Notes: a model not told the origin generated them from the letters alone. A stretch of 64,000 bases of DNA from Hyaloraphidium curvatum SAG 235-1 (GCA_025558095.1 JAIVFI010000002.1:1116001-1180000), one strand, 5' to 3'. Positions 2,349 through 53,381 are shown, counted from the stretch's first letter. A program made the numbers and translations.

Positions 2349-3570
2349 CTACCGTCCGACCATGGGACACGCGCTCTCGACCGTGAAGGTGACGCCGAGC
2401 CCGCGCAGGATCGAATAAATGCCGAATGCGAGGGTGAACAGCGTGACCACGTAGGCGCGAACGGCGCCGAAGTCCACGGCTAACCCAAAGAACCGAGAGC
2501 TCCATGACGCGCCGGGCAGCAGTGCGCCCATTAGCCGGTCCTGGTCCTCGAGCGCCGCGAGGGCTCGCGGGTCTGCGCCGCAATGGGTCGTCCGGAACGT
2601 GCCTCACGAGGACCGAGGCAACCGGAAGCGGGGTCATGCCCGCGGCCTCGGAATCCCCCACCCCATCCCCGTGCCCGGCGACGCGCAGCCAGCGGACCAT
2701 GCCCGCAAGCGGGTGCACATCGAAAGTTGGCGCCTGCTTCTTTATGTTGGGATCCGGCTTGACTGCGCATGGGCCCGCACGCTTGCGAGGTCCGCAGCAC
2801 CGCCGAACGAGCCCCCAGTTGGACAGGATTGGCGCGGTCACCCAGCCCAAGACCAACATGGATGCCGCAGTCGCAACTTGCGCGCTTCCAAAGAGCCCAT
2901 CATTGAAGACGAAGAGTGTGGGCAAGGCCGGGGGGGATCGGCCGCCGGAGGCCGAGGAAGGGGCGGGAAGGCCGTTCAAGCGGGAGTCTCGAAACCCGCA
3001 ATGTAGTCGAAAGTCTCCGGATACACACGGAACTGCGCCTTGAAGTCCTCCTCGTCCTGCCTCCACAGAGAAAACTCCCGCATCGCGTCCGTCTTCGGTA
3101 CTGCACGCGTCCTCGGACTCAGATAGCGCGTAGCGAGGCAGGCGCCCAAAAGGTGCGCGACATTGCCGAACTGCCGCGAGAGCCGCTTGTAGCGCCTGCT
3201 ACCCGTCCTCACGCGCGAGCGCAAGAATATAATTGCTTTTGCGCGGCGTTGGAGGGCCCTCAGCAGGTTCTTGCGCCTGGAAGAGCGCGGCATGGTTTTG
3301 TTTGACTTTGAAACCCCGCTAGGCCCTGCCGCTTGAAGCGGCGCAGTTGACCGCTTCAAGCAGACAACGCTTGAAACGGAAAACTCTAACTTTGAACCGC
3401 CCTAGTGCCCCGCGCGATTCGGCCTCCGGCGTCGATGGCGAAATCCTCCAGCTCCAGCCGATTCACCTGCTTCTCCAAATCGGTGACAAAGAGATCGCGC
3501 AAATGCTCTTCAGAGAGTGGTCACCGGCGTTCAGCTGCAGTCGGCGAAGGTTTGAGGGCTAGCCTATGCA
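2349..3570 (-). pseudogene. Decayed paralog of the 7-TM (GR-like candidate) gene at 50724-52166, split by a transposon remnant
   Basis: Collinear pieces match the intact copy: RDLFVTDL..FAIDAGGRIARG (~3405-3510) vs RDTFLSAL..IALDPITRRVLARG; FDVHPLAGMVRW and LVRHVPDDP vs FSAHGASGLARW and LLLHDPSDD; SRFFGLAVDFGAVRAYVVTLFTLAFGIYSILRGLGVTFTVESACP vs AKLLGFAVDYGVLRTVAVTALTLFVGLWSILKGLGVFATMQSVCP. It has an in-frame stop, frameshifts and lacks the TM3-TM6 region. Confidence 0.8.
2969..3402 (-). mobile_element. Truncated PIF/Harbinger-like DNA transposon (N-terminal transposase fragment only)
   Basis: ORF 2976-3359 encodes RYLSPRTRAVPK...DEEDFKAQFRVYPETFDYI, typical of the Harbinger transposase N-terminus. 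Imperfect terminal inverted repeat: AGGCCGTTCAA (2969-2979) and TTGAACCGCCC (3392-3402), 9/11 match. Several CGCTTGAA/TTCAAGC subterminal motifs. It interrupts a collinear host gene. Confidence 0.65.
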
Positions 3571-46255: not shown

Positions 46256-47761
46256 ATGGCGTCCTACGCGGCGCGAATCCTCTCGTTGCTGCTGTTATTT
46301 GCGCTCGCCGCCGCGTGCGCCGCGCAGATCGTGTCGGTCAAGACGGCCACGCGCTCCGTCGCCGGCGCGACGCGCGCCGTCTACCACGGCGGCCACGCAC
46401 ACGCCGGGCACGAGGGGGGCCATTCTCACGGCCATTCACATGGACATTCGGGCCACGGGCACGCCCACGCGCACGAGGAGGAGCATCTGCACGACATGGA
46501 GGAGCACGGCCACGCGGACCACGCGTCGGCCCACGGAGGACACTCTCATGGCGGACATTCCCACGCGGACCATTCCCATGGAGATCATTCGCATGGAGGG
46601 CGCGGTGGCGATCATACTCATGGAGCCGCTGCCGGGAAGGTCGCGGACAAGGAAGAACCGACCAGTGAGACCTTCCAAGGCATTCCGCAGACAGCAACCA
46701 ACACGCCTCCGATTCCAGCAGCTTCGTTTGCCTCCTACATTCCCTCGTTCCTGCCGCCAACCCTCGTCGCCATGCTCGCCCAGCTCCTGATTCCGCACAT
46801 ATCCACCTCAATGCTCTCCCCCGTCCTCGACGCCCTCCCTCCGGCTGCCATGGCCGCCGCCCTGTGTTTTGCCGGCGGCAGTGTGGTTGGCGAGGTATTC
46901 CTGCACGGCGTCGGCGAACGGATGCACGGACATGGACACGACCATGGAGGCCACGGGCACCACGAAGGCGGCGGGCTGCCGTACGAGCAGGCCGTCCTCG
47001 TCGGCATCCTGGCCTTCTTTGCCCTGGGCAGGCTGCTGGATGCGCTGCTTTCGGGTGCCGAGGGCGGAAGCAAGGAAAAGGCCGAACCGGCCGTGCCCGC
47101 TGAGGAAAGCACGGACGAGAAGGAGGCTCCAAAGGAGGACACGCGCCGACGCACGCGAGCCTCTGCCCAAGCCGAGCACGATCACCAATCGGAGCACGAC
47201 CACGACCACGCCCACGACCACGCCCACGATTCGGCCCACTTCCACGGCCCGCACGCCTCGAAGCGGCCCTCGCCCGCCCTCGCCCTGCACCACCTCTCCG
47301 CCCTCTCCCACTCCCTCCTCGACTCCCTCGCCCTCTCCGTCCCCTTCTTCCTGCACCCCTCCCCACCCTGGCCGGCGCTCGCCGCTGTCCTCCTCCACGA
47401 GGTCCCGCACCGCGCCGCCGCGCTGCTCGTCGGCAAGGCCCTCGGCGGCGACGCGCGGCAGCTCGGGCTGTGGGGCGGCACCGGTGTCTTGTTGGGCTGG
47501 GGATGCGGGTGGCTGCTTTCCGCGGCGGGGGCGGGGATGGGCGACCGCGAGGCGTGGGAGGGGGTTGCGGCGGGGGCGATGCTCTACGTGGGGATGGTGG
47601 GGGTGCTGGGGGAGGTGGCGGGACATTCGCACGGGCACGGGGAGGATCACCACGGGCACGGGCATGGGGGCGGGGGGAACAAGTTTGGGAGGGCGCTCGT
47701 AGAGATCATCGGGCTCGCGGCGGGAATGGCGAGCGCGGGGCTGGTCAAGCACGAGCATTGA
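46256..47761 (+). CDS. ZIP family zinc transporter (ZIP7/Yke4-like), very His-rich
   Basis: Signal peptide, (HG)n/HSH tracts, FAGGSVVGEVFLH, HSLLDSLA, LLHEVPH and AAGAMLYVGMV. Confidence 0.85.
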   Translation: MASYAARILSLLLLFALAAACAAQIVSVKTATRSVAGATRAVYHGGHAHAGHEGGHSHGHSHGHSGHGHAHAHEEEHLHDMEEHGHADHASAHGGHSHGGHSHADHSHGDHSHGGRGGDHTHGAAAGKVADKEEPTSETFQGIPQTATNTPPIPAASFASYIPSFLPPTLVAMLAQLLIPHISTSMLSPVLDALPPAAMAAALCFAGGSVVGEVFLHGVGERMHGHGHDHGGHGHHEGGGLPYEQAVLVGILAFFALGRLLDALLSGAEGGSKEKAEPAVPAEESTDEKEAPKEDTRRRTRASAQAEHDHQSEHDHDHAHDHAHDSAHFHGPHASKRPSPALALHHLSALSHSLLDSLALSVPFFLHPSPPWPALAAVLLHEVPHRAAALLVGKALGGDARQLGLWGGTGVLLGWGCGWLLSAAGAGMGDREAWEGVAAGAMLYVGMVGVLGEVAGHSHGHGEDHHGHGHGGGGNKFGRALVEIIGLAAGMASAGLVKHEH

Positions 47762-47932
47762 TGGATGTTGAAGGGTAGGCGGATGTACTTTATTCGGCGA
47801 TGCAGGAGCTGAACATGGCTTCGTAGTTCGACGGATGCGAGCCCGTCAAATTTTGTCCGGCTTTTGTCCTCACTGGCAAAAGAGCTCCCCGTCGCTTCGT
47901 GCGCTGAGCATCAATCCGAACCAAAAGCAATC

Positions 47933-50545
47933 ATGAGCGAGCGGAAGCCTACGGCGGCCGAGCTGAAGGAGGACGGCAATAAGAAGTTCCTGGACAAGCG
48001 CTACGACATGGCGCTTGCTTGCTACCGCCGCGCCCTGGCCGCCCCCGATGCCGACGTTCATTCCTTGGTCTCGATCCTTCTCAATCTGGGAATCAGCTTT
48101 GCTCGCACTGGGCAGCAGAAGACCAGCATCCTGATGTCTCTGGCCGCTTCGGTCCTAGCCGTCGGGGACAACGCAAGGCATGGCAAGGCGTTGATCCGAG
48201 CCGCGTCGGCGCTGCTGGCCGAGGGGCACAAAGTGGCGGCGGCTTACGCTTTGGCGGCAGGGATGAAGCTGGCTCCGGAGCTGTGTGCGCCACAGGCGGC
48301 CGAGTGGGGCTTGGACAACTTTGGCACCCAGCGGGCCTTTGTTCTTGCTGCCGCGGATTCCATTGAATGGATCGCACTCCCCGCGCCGTCTGGATCAGCC
48401 AGTGCCTCTGTGCTGCGCGAGCAGGGCAACGTGCTTTTTGCCGCGGGATCGCACGGACCGGCTTTGGAGCTGTACCTCGAGGCGCTTGCCTCCCATCCTG
48501 CCCTGGCTACCGTGCGCGCGATCCTCAGCAACATCTCGGCCTGCCAGCGGCGGAGGGGTGATGAGGTGGAGGCGGCTGAGAAAGCTATTGCGGCGATTGC
48601 GCTGGGCTCGTCAGCCAGGTCTTTTGCGCGGCTTGCGGAGGGGCTGACGGACATGGGCGAAACCTCGCGCGCCGTCGCCGTTTGCACTGCCGGCTTGCAC
48701 AAGGATCCGGGATCGGCGGAGCTCAAGAAGCTGCTTGACTCGATCGGTCCTTCAGCCGCTGCAGACACGTTGCGCAGATCGGAAAGCTCGAGGCAGAACG
48801 ACGAGACCCTGGAATCGCGCCTGGAGTCCAATCGTCGGATGAACGAGATGGTCGCAAGACTGGGACGGGCGCCGGGGCTGCCATTTACTCTCGACGTGCG
48901 GGTCAAGCCATTCCATCGCGAGCTAAGCCGCGATCAGTGGCCAGTCGGATGCGAAGCTTTGAAGAGGCAGTGGCAGACGAAGCTTGAACTGGGCTACGAG
49001 GAAGCACGGAGCACCGGAATGCACGAAATGCGGTTCAAGGAGCCGGCGATCGACAGAGGTCACGACACGGACTGGCTCAAGCGGCTCGGGCCCGGCATTA
49101 CCGACCGCCAGTTCGCCGAGTGGATGTTGACTCCCGAGCGGGGTTTCCCCGTGCGTTTTGCCCCCCGCCTGTCTTACGGAAGCGCGATACGCGGGCCGGG
49201 TGCCGACGTGCGCATGGTCCACAGCTTTGGCAACGCAGCCGTCCGGAACGAGATCCTCACCGCGGGCAAAACTCACGTCGCGGTCGGCTTTGTGGACCTT
49301 GCGACATTGCTCTCGGCCAAGCTCGCTGGCGCTCCGAAAGCGCTCAAGTGGTACGGGTTCGAAGCTGCCTCGCATTCGGTGGCCAAGACCATGGTGATCG
49401 TGGCGATGCTGGAGTCGGGTGCGTCTGTGGACGACTTGCTTGAAGTCTGGTACTCGGCGACGTGGACCGAATCGGGGTGGAAGGCCTTCCGCGAGGCCAT
49501 CGATCGCATGGACATCGACTCTTTCCGCGGTCGTGAGATTGACTCGGAGGTTCGCGCTTGGCTGCACCTTTGGAGGACCAGTCCCCGAGTCGCAATCGAA
49601 GAGGCAAGGAAGGAGATCTTCCTCGGACGCACGCGTTCCCAGAGCGACATCGCCAACTTCGTTGATCGCTCGGACAGGGTTGCCGTCATGGCCTACACGG
49701 TTTCTGGGGACTTGCCGTTGGACCGCGGGATCCCGATCTGCGCAAACGTAACGATGTTTCGGATGCTCCCTGGATACGCGAGGCAGCCGCACGAGCACTT
49801 CCTGTTCTCGATCTCGCAGGACGAGCTTTGGCCGAGGCGCAGGGCGGGATCGAAGGACGTTGTTCGTGCTGGGGTCGAATACCTGCGGGACCGCGTCGGA
49901 TGGCTTCGGACGGCTATCGAGCAAGGAATCGTGCGCATTTCGGGCCTCGAAGTCGCGATGGTCGAGCCAGGGGCTGCCATCAACCGCCGCATCCGCTCGC
50001 TCGGGCCTTGGACCATGAGCTGGAGCAACGTGTGCGACTACATGACGCCGGCCGACTTCCACCGCGTGGCGCGCGAGTGCAGCGCGGACGAGGACACGGT
50101 GCACTACACCTACTCCATGAACTGGAGATACGACGTGAAGAACTCGTTCGTGCTCGACTGTCCTTCCTCGGAAGGTCGCATGCTGGCGCTGACGCAGGCC
50201 AAGAAAGCCATCGAGGCCATGTACCAGCTGCGTGGGATCCATAAGCTGCTGCTCAGTCCTCCAATCGACAACGCGCTCAACATTGCCGACTACGGCCTGA
50301 GCCTGGCGTCGTACCGGAAATGGGTGGCCGCGTTCTGCAAGACCGCTGGCAGCGAGGTCAACGTCGCCATGGTGGAGCTGCAACCGTACACCCTGCTCTC
50401 GCAGGCCAACAACATCATCTACTTTTCGTTCACGTACGACACCAACATCAAGTTTGAGAACGCAAATACCGACGGCGTCGGCTGGGATCAGCAGGAGTTG
50501 GAGAAAGCGATGGCGAGGATGGGAATGAAGGGCGAGAGGAAGTAG
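47933..50545 (+). CDS. TPR-repeat protein with a large C-terminal domain of unknown function
   Basis: Two TPR blocks (LKEDGNKKF...ALACYRRAL; LREQGNVLF...ALELYLEAL). C-terminal HVAVGFVDL and SWSNVCDYM motifs. Intronless, 870 aa. Confidence 0.8.
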   Translation: MSERKPTAAELKEDGNKKFLDKRYDMALACYRRALAAPDADVHSLVSILLNLGISFARTGQQKTSILMSLAASVLAVGDNARHGKALIRAASALLAEGHKVAAAYALAAGMKLAPELCAPQAAEWGLDNFGTQRAFVLAAADSIEWIALPAPSGSASASVLREQGNVLFAAGSHGPALELYLEALASHPALATVRAILSNISACQRRRGDEVEAAEKAIAAIALGSSARSFARLAEGLTDMGETSRAVAVCTAGLHKDPGSAELKKLLDSIGPSAAADTLRRSESSRQNDETLESRLESNRRMNEMVARLGRAPGLPFTLDVRVKPFHRELSRDQWPVGCEALKRQWQTKLELGYEEARSTGMHEMRFKEPAIDRGHDTDWLKRLGPGITDRQFAEWMLTPERGFPVRFAPRLSYGSAIRGPGADVRMVHSFGNAAVRNEILTAGKTHVAVGFVDLATLLSAKLAGAPKALKWYGFEAASHSVAKTMVIVAMLESGASVDDLLEVWYSATWTESGWKAFREAIDRMDIDSFRGREIDSEVRAWLHLWRTSPRVAIEEARKEIFLGRTRSQSDIANFVDRSDRVAVMAYTVSGDLPLDRGIPICANVTMFRMLPGYARQPHEHFLFSISQDELWPRRRAGSKDVVRAGVEYLRDRVGWLRTAIEQGIVRISGLEVAMVEPGAAINRRIRSLGPWTMSWSNVCDYMTPADFHRVARECSADEDTVHYTYSMNWRYDVKNSFVLDCPSSEGRMLALTQAKKAIEAMYQLRGIHKLLLSPPIDNALNIADYGLSLASYRKWVAAFCKTAGSEVNVAMVELQPYTLLSQANNIIYFSFTYDTNIKFENANTDGVGWDQQELEKAMARMGMKGERK

Positions 50546-50723
50546 ATGCTTCCGTGGATGATCTCCGTGATGCAGCGAGCACGCCTATTATTTCGATCCC
50601 CACTCTAGCTGATCCCTCCGAAGATGTCGAGAGCTGGTCGCTCGATCCGCCGGATGTGGTCGAAATTCGAAGCGTCGTTCAGTTGTGACTGAGTGCCCCC
50701 TACCGTGTTCTTCAACGGCTCTC

Positions 50724-52166
50724 ATGGCAGCCGGCAAAGACGCCGCTCTGTTTAGCGCGCGGGCGCTTCTTGCGGCGTTCCCGCAGGCACCGCCGGCCGC
50801 GTCGTTCCTCTCGGGACTGCCTGCGCCGGCTGACCCCGCCGAGGCGCAGCGCGTAGCTGACCCGCTGACGCGCGACACATTCCTCTCGGCACTGTCCGCG
50901 GCGCCAGGGCTGCGGGCTGTAACGCGGCTGCAGATTGCGCTCGACCCGATCACCCGCCGCGTGCTCGCCCGCGGCGTCGGGGCGTGGCTGGCGCACTGCG
51001 CCGTCGTGCCGATGGTCGCCCTCTTCGGCGGGTTCGGCACGCCACAGCTGGCGCTGGGCGTCGTCGGCATGCTCTGCGCGAGCCTGACACCTACCGTGAT
51101 CCTGCCGCTGTTTGCGCAGTTCCGCTCGACGCTGGTGCTCGGCAGCCGCGAGTTCTCGGCCCATGGTGCCTCGGGGCTGGCGCGCTGGGAGCAGCTCGTC
51201 GGCACCGCAGGCACCGGAGGCTCAGATTCGCTGCTGCTGCACGACCCCTCCGACGACCGCTGTCCCTGCCCCGCGCCGTCGTGCGCGGGATCGTGCCGTT
51301 GGCACGCCTCGGCCCTACGCATTTCGGAGTGGCTAGTCAAATATGGCCTCTTTTGCACCGTTTTTCTGAGCTACAGCTGGACCGGGCTGACCGTTCCCGG
51401 AACGTGGCTTAACGCCTGGAGTATCGCCCTTGCCGTCACATCCATAGTCGTCATGCTCCTTACCGCGGTGGCACAATCCCTCTCGCGCTTCTCCACCAAC
51501 GTAGCCCTCCTGGAAGTGACCGACCGCGTGCGCCGCCGCGCAATGAAGCTTGCCCTCGGCGACATGCTCGCGACCTTCCACACGGCAGTCGAATCCGACA
51601 GCGTGGCTGGCCTCGCTTCCTCGGCGTCCAAAGAACCTTTCGAGGTGCTGCACGATCTCCTCATCGCCACGTGGGCGCGACGCATCCGCCAATTCAATAC
51701 CTCGTCCCCTCTCCTACTCTCCCTCATCCCTTACCTAACGTTCGCGGTCGCCAACATGGCCGCCTTCTCGTGCCTGCCGGCCTACTACATCGTCTACACC
51801 GGCTATGTCGCCGTCCTCAACCTCTTCGACCTCGTCAACGTGGCCGCCGAAAACCGCGGCATCGACTCCCAGCGCCGCATGTACCTCGACGCGATCCGGG
51901 AGCTCCGCTCGCTCGGGGACCGCGCGGCGCGCGCGGGAGCCTCCCCGGAGCTGCTCCGCGCCGTCGACGCCCGCGCGGCGCTGCTCGCGACGTTTTCGGA
52001 TGTCGACGGGTACCGCGCCAAGCTGCTGGGGTTCGCGGTCGACTACGGCGTGCTGAGGACGGTGGCGGTGACCGCCCTCACGCTGTTTGTGGGGTTGTGG
52101 AGCATACTGAAGGGGTTGGGGGTGTTTGCGACAATGCAGTCGGTGTGTCCGCACAAGAACTTCTGA
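50724..52166 (+). CDS. Seven-TM membrane protein; candidate gustatory-receptor-like (7TMIC/DUF3537-like) channel
   Basis: Seven hydrophobic segments by eye, and a C-terminal KLLGFAVDYGVLRT..TLFVGLWSIL motif. The CDS itself is well supported by its paralog at 2349-3570; the family call is inference. Confidence 0.75.
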   Translation: MAAGKDAALFSARALLAAFPQAPPAASFLSGLPAPADPAEAQRVADPLTRDTFLSALSAAPGLRAVTRLQIALDPITRRVLARGVGAWLAHCAVVPMVALFGGFGTPQLALGVVGMLCASLTPTVILPLFAQFRSTLVLGSREFSAHGASGLARWEQLVGTAGTGGSDSLLLHDPSDDRCPCPAPSCAGSCRWHASALRISEWLVKYGLFCTVFLSYSWTGLTVPGTWLNAWSIALAVTSIVVMLLTAVAQSLSRFSTNVALLEVTDRVRRRAMKLALGDMLATFHTAVESDSVAGLASSASKEPFEVLHDLLIATWARRIRQFNTSSPLLLSLIPYLTFAVANMAAFSCLPAYYIVYTGYVAVLNLFDLVNVAAENRGIDSQRRMYLDAIRELRSLGDRAARAGASPELLRAVDARAALLATFSDVDGYRAKLLGFAVDYGVLRTVAVTALTLFVGLWSILKGLGVFATMQSVCPHKNF

Positions 52167-52292
52167 ATCGTTTCGGGCATGTTGAAAGATGGGGACGTCG
52201 GACACGTGCGGCGTAGGTTGTGGACGGAGTGGAGGCTTCATCTTGAACGCAGGCTAGGAAGGGAGTTGATGGGCGGTACATCGAGCAGGGCA

Positions 52293-53381
52293 CTACTGCT
52301 CCCCCGCGAGCCGACGAACAGCCTCGAACTCCTCGCACTCCGTCCCGCCGACAGTTCCCAGCTCTTCCCACGCCCGGATCTCCCGAAGACACTCCCTCGC
52401 GCGCTCCACGGTCCACTGTTCGACCCCCTGGAACTCCAGCGCACCGATCGAGACGGCGACCGGCGGGGTCAGGCCGGAAAGGAGGGATCGTACGGCAGTA
52501 AGGTCTGTCGGGCCGGTTTCTTTGAGAGGCAGGCGGCGGATGTGCAGGGTCCGAAGGTTCGGCGGGAGACGGAGGCGGAGAAGCATCTCCGCGGAAGCAC
52601 CACCCAGGTCCAACGATTCGACACTCGTCATCTTGGGCAAGTTCGACGTTCGAAATATATGGTTCTAAGCCCCTGGGCGGCCACGCGCAGGGCGACCGGT
52701 TTGAAGTCTTGCCGTCCGGCCAGCACTTCCAGTTGACGACCGTAAGCGAGCCAGGACCTGATCTTTGGAAACACGTGCTACGGCGTCTTTTCAAACCGAG
52801 GAGCTCTGGCTCTTGGTAGCCGACTTCGAAGTGCGCCGTCTTCAGAGCCGGACACGCCCGGATCACGCGGGCAAGGGCTGCCGCAGTACACGAAGACCGC
52901 AGTGTCAAGTGCTCTAAAAGAGGCAGCTGAGGAAACGTGGCGACGATAATGCTCCGAGCATCCCTGTGAAGGAACAGCTCGAGCTCCAGCGAGCACAGTT
53001 GGGTGAGATTGGCTCCAGCAAAGGCTTCCAAATCCCCCAATTCCCGGTCAATCTTGAACGAAAGTAGCGCAAGGGCGGAACAGGAGTGCAGGAGTCGCCG
53101 TTCGTGGCCACGAAACCGAACGAGGCACGTGAGGTCCAGATCCTTCACGTATCGGCACATTCCTCCCGCAATCAGCATGTCCACGACGGCTGGAACTCTA
53201 TCTTCGTGAAGCCAGGAAAGACAAAAGCGTTCCATTAACCTGGGTAACACCAGTTCGTGAAGATCCCGGCACGCGGAGAGAGTTCACGGAGGTTTCGCGA
53301 CCTGGGCTGGAGGTGCGAGGCAACGGCCAGAAACAACTCCGGCGGCAGCAGGGCTTCAGAAGCATCGTTTGACGATGCCAT
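52293..53381 (-). pseudogene. F-box/LRR-like pseudogene with several lesions
   Basis: LLPPELFLAVASHL F-box; frameshift near 53275; frameshift plus TAG near 52780; another frameshift near 52650 before LPKMTSVESLDL. Confidence 0.8.

Follow-up and report, generated by a model that had tools for sequence, protein, structure and literature searches.

The gene at 50724-52166 (+) appears to encode a functional representative of a very large family of seven-helix membrane proteins built like the 7TMIC channels; this family has so far been seen in Hyaloraphidium curvatum only. By the window we mean the whole stretch of DNA that was analysed (64,000 nucleotides, contig C2:1116001-1180000). We classed the family as a new one with the 7TMIC fold, the fold of the insect odorant (OR) and gustatory (GR) receptors, and assigned it neither to the GRs or ORs nor to the DUF3537 proteins. 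The reading of the product as a channel-type receptor would hold with a probability of about 0.6 in our judgement, and we rate an environmental chemosensory role lower than this.

The reading frame runs uninterrupted from its ATG over 480 codons (ORF scan), and this ATG aligned with the N-termini of the paralogs. In an hmmsearch of six-frame pieces, the family profile matched the product over its full length (E 3e-172). The gene has a GC3 of 0.84 versus a GC2 of 0.52, and comparison with its closest paralog (60% identity, contig C14) gave a dN of 0.33, a dS of about 1.0 and a dN/dS of about 0.33. These data show that the gene is intact and under purifying selection. We also used X1, the one public run with this stretch, in which a 10.9-kb contig spans 47646-53500 with 0 differences. 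This contig begins at 47646, directly behind an Illumina adapter, and has a 52-nt GT..AG intron at 47774-47825 spliced out, so that run X1 holds RNA. Within 50724-52166 it has 0 joints, which fits an intronless transcript; the contig stands for coverage only, since strand, transcript ends and expression level are not readable from it. G+C content is 58-75% per 2 kb across the 64-kb stretch, and DNA this GC-rich therefore holds many spurious antisense ORFs. One long example is a 256-aa antisense ORF at 50588-51358.

Segments of the product were defined by a 19-residue Kyte-Doolittle scan together with the helices of an AlphaFold2 (AF2) model. The gene and the parts of its product are listed below with the evidence for each.

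50724-52166 (+): complete intronless coding sequence for a protein of the H. curvatum 7TMIC-fold family, 480 codons plus stop
50724-50960 (+): N-terminal region, predicted cytoplasmic, residues 1-79; pLDDT 80-96 for residues 11-79
50961-51110 (+): TM1 (80-101), a 4-residue outer loop and TM2 (106-129); hydropathy, AF2 helices
51240-51290 (+): His/Asp/Cys motif of the long TM2-TM3 loop; invariant in 32/32 paralogs
51318-51485 (+): TM3 (199-223), a 7-residue outer loop and TM4 (231-254); hydropathy, AF2
51486-51701 (+): long inner loop 2, with the TM4 extension to residue 291 and the TM5 extension from 305; AF2 helices 260-291 and 305-332
51702-51848 (+): TM5 (327-348), a 4-residue outer loop and TM6 (353-375); hydropathy, alignment, AF2
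51849-52043 (+): inner loop 3, with the TM6 extension to 403, helix 7a (408-424) and the 7a-7b linker; AF2, column counts
52044-52163 (+): TM7b (441-464) and a short outer C-terminal tail; AF2 helix, entropy, column counts

The seven membrane helices lie at residues ~80-101, 106-129, 199-223, 231-254, 327-348, 353-375 and 441-464. The product is 480 residues long and its paralogs 476-538, which we counted as agreeing with the ~350-500 residues of 7TMICs. Across 32 paralogs with 29-60% identity, the residues H173, D177, C180, C182, C187, R268, W317, C350, N377, G436, R445, G466 and C475 are invariant. In the N-terminal region the alignment shows the family motifs LLAxFPxxP ... DPAxxxR...PLT, and its part from residue ~47 onward can be aligned to where insect receptor chains begin at their N-terminus (structural alignments begin at 47-56). 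The motif residues of the TM2-TM3 loop (H173, D177, C180, C182, C187, A188 and G189) are the same in 32/32 paralogs, and by column entropy this His/Cys segment is the most conserved inner-loop segment (1.67 bits). TM3 and TM4, at 2.53 and 2.58 bits, belong to the family's most variable helices. Inner loop 2 has a net charge of +4.4 and, in the model, is the counterpart of the portion of insect receptors that belongs to the anchor domain. The most conserved segment of all is the TM5-TM6 outer loop (EL3; 1.09 bits), where C350 is invariant and P352 near-invariant. Inner loop 3 has the invariant N377, and the conserved 7a-7b linker, 16 residues long, has the invariant G436 within an LGFxV stretch; the initial annotation likened this stretch to the GF-x-(I/V/L)-D motif of GRs, a putative correspondence. 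TM7b is the most conserved helix, with 1.43 bits versus 2.3-2.7 for TM1-6. It carries the invariant R445 followed by T446, T450, T453, G457, S460 and G464 at helical spacing, a Thr/Gly/Ser stripe predicted to form one small/polar face. Behind it, G466 and C475 are invariant in the outer C-terminal tail.

Much of this topology had been proposed in an initial annotation made from the sequence of the window. Hydropathy and the AF2 helices agree on the seven hydrophobic segments noticed there. The CPCPAPSC string (residues 180-187) and the C-terminal string quoted there are found as written; these strings are not chance features, and residues such as C180, C182, C187, G466 and C475 are invariant in 32 paralogs sharing only 29-60% identity. 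Its pattern of short and long loops also recurs across the family. Over the 32 paralogs, the outer loops average 6 aa (TM1-2), 9 aa (TM3-4) and 4 aa (TM5-6), versus 76 aa (TM2-3), 73 aa (TM4-5) and 66 aa (TM6-7) for the inner loops. As for its proposed N-in orientation, we counted K+R within 15 residues of the membrane and found a mean of 13.8 on the side of the N-terminus and the even-numbered loops versus 1.4 on the side of the odd-numbered loops and the C-terminus (32 paralogs). The positive-inside rule thus predicts a cytoplasmic location for the N-terminus and for the long loops. This predicted N-in orientation is that of insect receptors and the opposite of that of GPCRs. The placement of cysteines is consistent with it, with three Cys and a His on the reducing side and two invariant Cys outside.

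The AF2 model, run with an alignment of paralogs only, has a pTM of 0.89 and a pLDDT of 91.2 (88-91 over five models). Its long helices span residues 231-291 (kinked; 231-254 and 260-291), 305-348 and 353-403, and are followed by 408-424 and 441-464. Judged by helix length in the model, TM4, TM5 and TM6 far exceed a membrane span, as they do where an anchor domain is present, and the seventh helix is split into 7a (408-424) and 7b (441-464). Long TM4-6, a split TM7 and Orco-like packing are the hallmarks used by Benton and co-workers (PMC9998090). The model has all three of these, including packing that resembles that of Orco. When it was compared with the PDB by Foldseek, all matches with a probability of at least 0.54 were insect GRs or ORs, with E-values of only 0.02-0.6 and TM scores of 0.27-0.36. 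The insect chains used for comparison were AaegOR10 (PDB 8v00/8v02), MhOR5 (7lic), Orco (6c70), BmGr9 (8vc1) and Gr43a (8jm9). Structural alignments are co-linear across 85-95% of the receptor chains at 6-13% identity. The initial annotation would have yielded to an N-out or non-7TM topology or to the lack of a structural match to Orco or the GRs. The topology is predicted to be N-in with 7 TM helices, and for two models that are 29% identical to each other all 7TMIC cluster representatives outrank the other 48,000 chains. A shape search of the ESM Atlas gave TM scores of 0.58-0.60 to three unnamed clusters (Cnidaria, Echinodermata and Chlorophyta), which we treat as a lead only. Prediction of a tetramer from four copies of residues 226-472 returned a score of 0.00; here the alignment was not used and the fold of the partners was uncertain, so that this score speaks neither for nor against assembly.

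Sequence-level searches gave no link to known 7TMICs. Pfam searches with the 32 paralogs at E-values up to 10 gave no match, including 7tm_6 (PF02949), 7tm_7 (PF08395) and DUF3537 (PF12056), and a profile search of all PDB chain sequences returned noise only. Searches of the genome with PF08395 and PF12056 had 0 matches, but the controls were also unrecovered. Recognition in a language-model atlas was low (1567). The top neighbours were unnamed ciliate clusters (0.92), and DUF3537 came at rank 20 with a score of 0.87; these neighbours, DUF3537 included, are a lead and not evidence. The canonical GR motif TYhhhhhQF is absent from TM7b, which reads T-L-x-V-G-L-W-S-x-L, and only the Thr could correspond. 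Because there is no Pfam match and TYhhhhhQF is lacking, the product was not classed as a GR or an OR. These Pfam and PDB searches revealed no similarity to a GRL or DUF3537 member and none to any other family, which agrees only with the weaker form of the sequence criterion for 7TMICs, namely that a candidate should not resemble another family. Since no sequence method links it to 7TMICs, we infer homology from fold, topology and architecture alone. As a comparison, identity between branches of the 7TMIC superfamily can be as low as 8%, and failure of sequence links is usual among them (PMC9998090).

The initial annotation had also proposed an expanded repertoire, and this is borne out by genome and protein searches. 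A six-frame search of the genome (32-Mb assembly, 55 contigs) with the protein gave at least 99 matches from 89 scored candidates, with 735 flagged. With a 32-sequence profile there were at least 88 matches; all 86 of the 86 scored candidates were positive, so that at least 86 genome loci were scored, and 882 were flagged, nearly all of the matches being full-length open frames. Both genome counts are lower bounds. Searching 1.84 billion proteins (representatives at 50% identity) with the profile gave 461 matches at E <= 1e-3, 416 at <= 1e-10 and 294 at <= 1e-30. From the best 150 listed we sampled ten, spread over the list; all (10/10) were singleton H. curvatum entries named 'hypothetical protein DFJ74DRAFT_...'. 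Word-index searches, a method nearly blind to this family, returned the protein itself and one paralog when the single protein was used, the query only with the 32-sequence profile, and the query and one H. curvatum fragment with the C-terminal region. A metagenome scan with two family motifs, a weak method here, gave 180 pattern matches with no relative among them by tblastn. We estimate that the family comprises several hundred genes, seen so far in H. curvatum only, a species placed in Monoblepharomycota within the chytridiomyceta.

A second copy lies in the same window and consists of two abutting pieces:

2581-2934 (-): relic piece 1, profile positions 96-193; hmmsearch E 1.6e-9
2361-2579 (-): relic piece 2, profile positions 424-496; hmmsearch E 2.9e-24, tblastn E 8e-11

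Piece 1 covers TM1, TM2 and the inner loop as far as the start of the His/Cys motif. Piece 2 is in a different frame and covers the 7a-7b linker, TM7b and the tail. A deletion has removed about 230 profile positions (TM3 to 7a), and there is a frameshift between what is left. For an N-terminal part beyond 3403, the profile gave only a non-significant hint at ~3470-3540 (score -4.2). This copy, at 2361-2934 (-), is a dead relic and not a working paralog. The claim of a paralog within the same 64 kb therefore stands as to the presence of a family copy there and fails as to its being a working one, and the turnover claimed along with it is seen in this dead copy, which fits birth-and-death turnover.

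In solved insect channels (Orco and the ORs), the tetramer has a central pore lined by TM7b and an anchor made of cytoplasmic extensions, and its ligand pocket is built from the variable outer halves of the remaining helices. On this model, the H. curvatum product would assemble as a tetramer whose central pore is surrounded by the conserved TM7b with its Thr/Gly/Ser face. The helical extensions on the inner side would anchor the subunits to one another, and the variable outer halves of TM1-TM6 could form a pocket specific to each paralog. The paralogs would then be ligand-gated ion channels, each tuned to an environmental chemical of its own. A conserved TM7b, variable TM1-6 and hundreds of paralogs have, on our best reading, the look of a ligand-gated repertoire with differing specificities. 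With three Cys and a His on the reducing side, the cytoplasmic H-x3-D-x2-C-x-C-x4-C loop is a candidate zinc site and probably binds zinc. C350 and C475 are both outside, and the model pairs short strands at 350-352 and 468-470, so these residues are candidates for a disulfide and probably form one. Of the earlier description of the protein as a divergent branch of tetrameric ligand-gated channels, the architecture is thus supported; we infer the tetramer and the gating, and sequence provides no link to 7TMICs. The fullest version of the proposal, in which several hundred ligand-gated 7TMIC chemoreceptors, a repertoire of insect size, arose independently in H. curvatum and carry a His/Cys metal-binding loop and an outer disulfide, is tentative and in our estimate a little short of even odds.

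Other explanations bear on different layers of this evidence. Long spurious ORFs are frequent in DNA of this composition, as the antisense frame of 256 aa illustrates, and 50724-52166 could be a chance or non-functional open frame of the same sort. We consider this extremely improbable and rejected it on conservation, the family profile match and dN/dS: the profile matches over the full length at E 3e-172 with all invariant residues present, dN/dS is about 0.33 with a GC3 of 0.84, the contig of the RNA-holding run X1 covers the gene, and the genuinely dead copy at 2361-2934 looks quite unlike it. There is similarly next to no chance that the product is a GPCR-type N-out seven-helix receptor or a transporter, readings with which it shares the count of seven hydrophobic helices and nothing else. 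An N-terminus outside the membrane and the helix arrangement of GPCRs were not found, and the GPCR reading was rejected because the positive-inside rule predicts N-in and the fold ranking favours insect receptors. The transporter reading was rejected on Foldseek matches with TM scores of about 0.1 and probabilities below 0.15. It is somewhat easier to imagine, if still quite unlikely, that this is an unrelated lineage-specific seven-helix family whose likeness to insect receptors is convergent or is an artefact of predicting a structure from a paralog-only alignment. The ranking of 7TMIC representatives above 48,000 other chains for two models sharing 29% identity argues against this, as does co-linear alignment across 85-95% of the receptor chains. 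In addition, the N-in orientation, the loop pattern, the length, the split TM7 and the long TM4-6 agree independently, and the low identity is that of known 7TMIC branches, which also go down to 8% (PMC9998090).

The alternative with the most substance accepts the 7TMIC fold and kinship and assigns the family a membrane role other than environmental chemoreception. The product could be an intracellular or constitutive channel, like PHTF or DUF3537, or belong to a family for recognition of and defence against parasites or viruses. Evidence from the fold is identical for this alternative and for the chemoreceptor reading, and immunity-like systems also yield large families with fast turnover, of which the dead copy in the window could be a sign. 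We take H. curvatum to be non-flagellate and non-motile, so it is not evident what behaviour chemoreception would serve. The functions of non-animal 7TMICs are unknown (PMC7746228, PMC9998090), and inner loop 1, being long and structured, brings to mind the PHTF-like architecture of Class B (bioRxiv 10.1101/2023.08.30.555482). However, a conserved TM7b combined with variable TM1-6 matches families of ligand-gated receptors, and a family of several hundred divergent paralogs is more readily explained by a repertoire of specificities than by a housekeeping channel. On balance we regard a role other than chemoreception as unlikely, though clearly worth keeping in view, and prefer the reading as a ligand-gated receptor repertoire.

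Compared with the insect ORs, Orco and GRs, the H. curvatum family has no detectable sequence similarity (6-13% identity in structural alignments), has ~46 additional conserved N-terminal residues, and combines an inner loop 1 of ~70 residues carrying an invariant His/Cys motif with a very short outer loop 2 (TM3-4) and the invariant outer C350 and C475. Its genes are intronless and its host is a fungus. In insect receptors the TM3-TM4 loop is much longer and inner loop 1 much shorter than here, and the 7a-7b linker of Orco is shorter than the 16 residues found in this family. The chytrid GRLs SpunGRL1 and SpalGRL1 (Spizellomyces) likewise come from early-diverging fungi and have 350-500 aa, seven helices, an N-in orientation and longer inner loops (PMC7746228). 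By contrast, they were found via GRL sequence similarity and are single-copy in each species, whereas the H. curvatum family lacks such similarity and has hundreds of copies; this comparison is by description. Benton et al. (2020) reported two Spizellomyces species with one GRL each (PMC7746228), and Himmel et al. (2023) found fungal 7TMICs only in Chytridiomycota and Blastocladiomycota, with Hyaloraphidium unmentioned (bioRxiv 10.1101/2023.08.30.555482). Plant DUF3537 proteins (PF12056) and other Class-A 7TMICs share the common superfamily fold according to published structure predictions. The plant families have 4-12 members (PMC7746228), and neither the H. curvatum protein nor its 32 paralogs match PF12056. 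The PHTF-like Class-B 7TMICs have a 7TMIC core with an enlarged TM2-TM3 inner loop, as does the H. curvatum family (bioRxiv 10.1101/2023.08.30.555482). However, in PHTF this loop exceeds 300 residues and the gene is conserved and low-copy (PMC9998090), whereas in H. curvatum the loop has ~70 residues with the His/Cys motif and the family has grown to a huge size. A literature search found no paper that joins Hyaloraphidium with gustatory, odorant, chemosensory or 7TM receptors or that describes this family. Neither the His/Cys loop nor the outer cysteine pair is reported for 7TMICs in PMC7746228, PMC9998090 or bioRxiv 10.1101/2023.08.30.555482.

Outside animals and plants, 7TMICs are known as rare, low-copy and of unknown function. 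For fungi, the published record comprises the two Spizellomyces genes and chytrid and blastocladiomycete hits that are not specified further (PMC7746228; bioRxiv 10.1101/2023.08.30.555482). Hundreds of divergent intact copies in a fungus would show that massive birth-and-death expansion of this fold is not a speciality of animals, and an insect-sized repertoire, if true, would be the first large expansion of the receptor class outside them. One may then ask what a planktonic saprotroph would detect with several hundred copies. If the reading holds, these genes, being intronless, would also be a tractable system in which to study what is sensed by non-animal 7TMICs. Their short intronless form suits heterologous expression and could make ancestral 7TMIC function testable, and two definite features, the invariant His/Cys loop and the pair of outer cysteines, lend themselves to mutation.

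We also made several observations on the surroundings of the two copies. A k-mer search upstream of the 32 paralogs found no shared motif apart from GC-rich k-mers. The gene at 50724-52166 stands alone, with an unrelated TPR gene on one side and a convergent ORF on the other; those intact paralogs that lie nearest to it on the same contig are 32-62 kb upstream of the window. Near the relic, positions 2969-3402 hold the genome's only copy of a 434-bp stretch. Just outside this stretch is a perfect 13-nt inverted repeat, with its arms at 2943-2955 and 3419-3431.

The receptor-like gene (50724-52166, +) is solitary, whereas its paralogs at L002, L010 and L011 (genomic loci with their own local coordinates) occur in close inverted pairs. 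At these three loci a second family match was found at most 1-2 kb from the first and, in 3/3 cases, on the strand opposite to the main copy of the locus:

L002:184-1062 (-), second family match
L010:3722-4213 (-), second family match
L011:3289-3981 (+), second family match

Close inverted pairs therefore make up part of the family. Three further members are located on the same contig as the window, 32-62 kb upstream of it:

G000:C2:1054278-1055699, family member
G000:C2:1081071-1082099, family member
G000:C2:1082923-1084344, family member

The following features surround or overlap the receptor-like gene:

46256-47761 (+), membrane-protein ORF with several long His/Gly-rich tracts (HGHSHGH-type)
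47774-47825, 52-nt GT..AG intron
47864-50545, 893-aa TPR-protein ORF
50588-51358 (-), 256-aa antisense ORF
52078-53250 (-), 390-aa convergent ORF

Read by eye, the His/Gly-rich ORF is a candidate ZIP-like metal transporter. The intron lies directly upstream of the TPR-protein ORF and has been removed by splicing in the RNA-derived contig. Because this contig begins at 47646 behind Illumina adapter sequence, that position may be a transcript end.

At the other side, the convergent ORF, for which no Pfam match was found, extends 89 nt into the receptor-like gene at its 3' end, giving a tail-to-tail overlap of the two coding frames. Alternatively, the convergent ORF may contain an unrecognised 3' intron. 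The antisense ORF overlapping the receptor-like gene, and several ORFs of >100 aa in other frames, were rejected as genes and are artefacts typical of GC-rich DNA.

Near the broken family relic, a 434-bp stretch (2969-3402) that is single-copy in a genome search is flanked by a perfect 13-nt inverted repeat:

2943-2955 and 3419-3431, repeat arms
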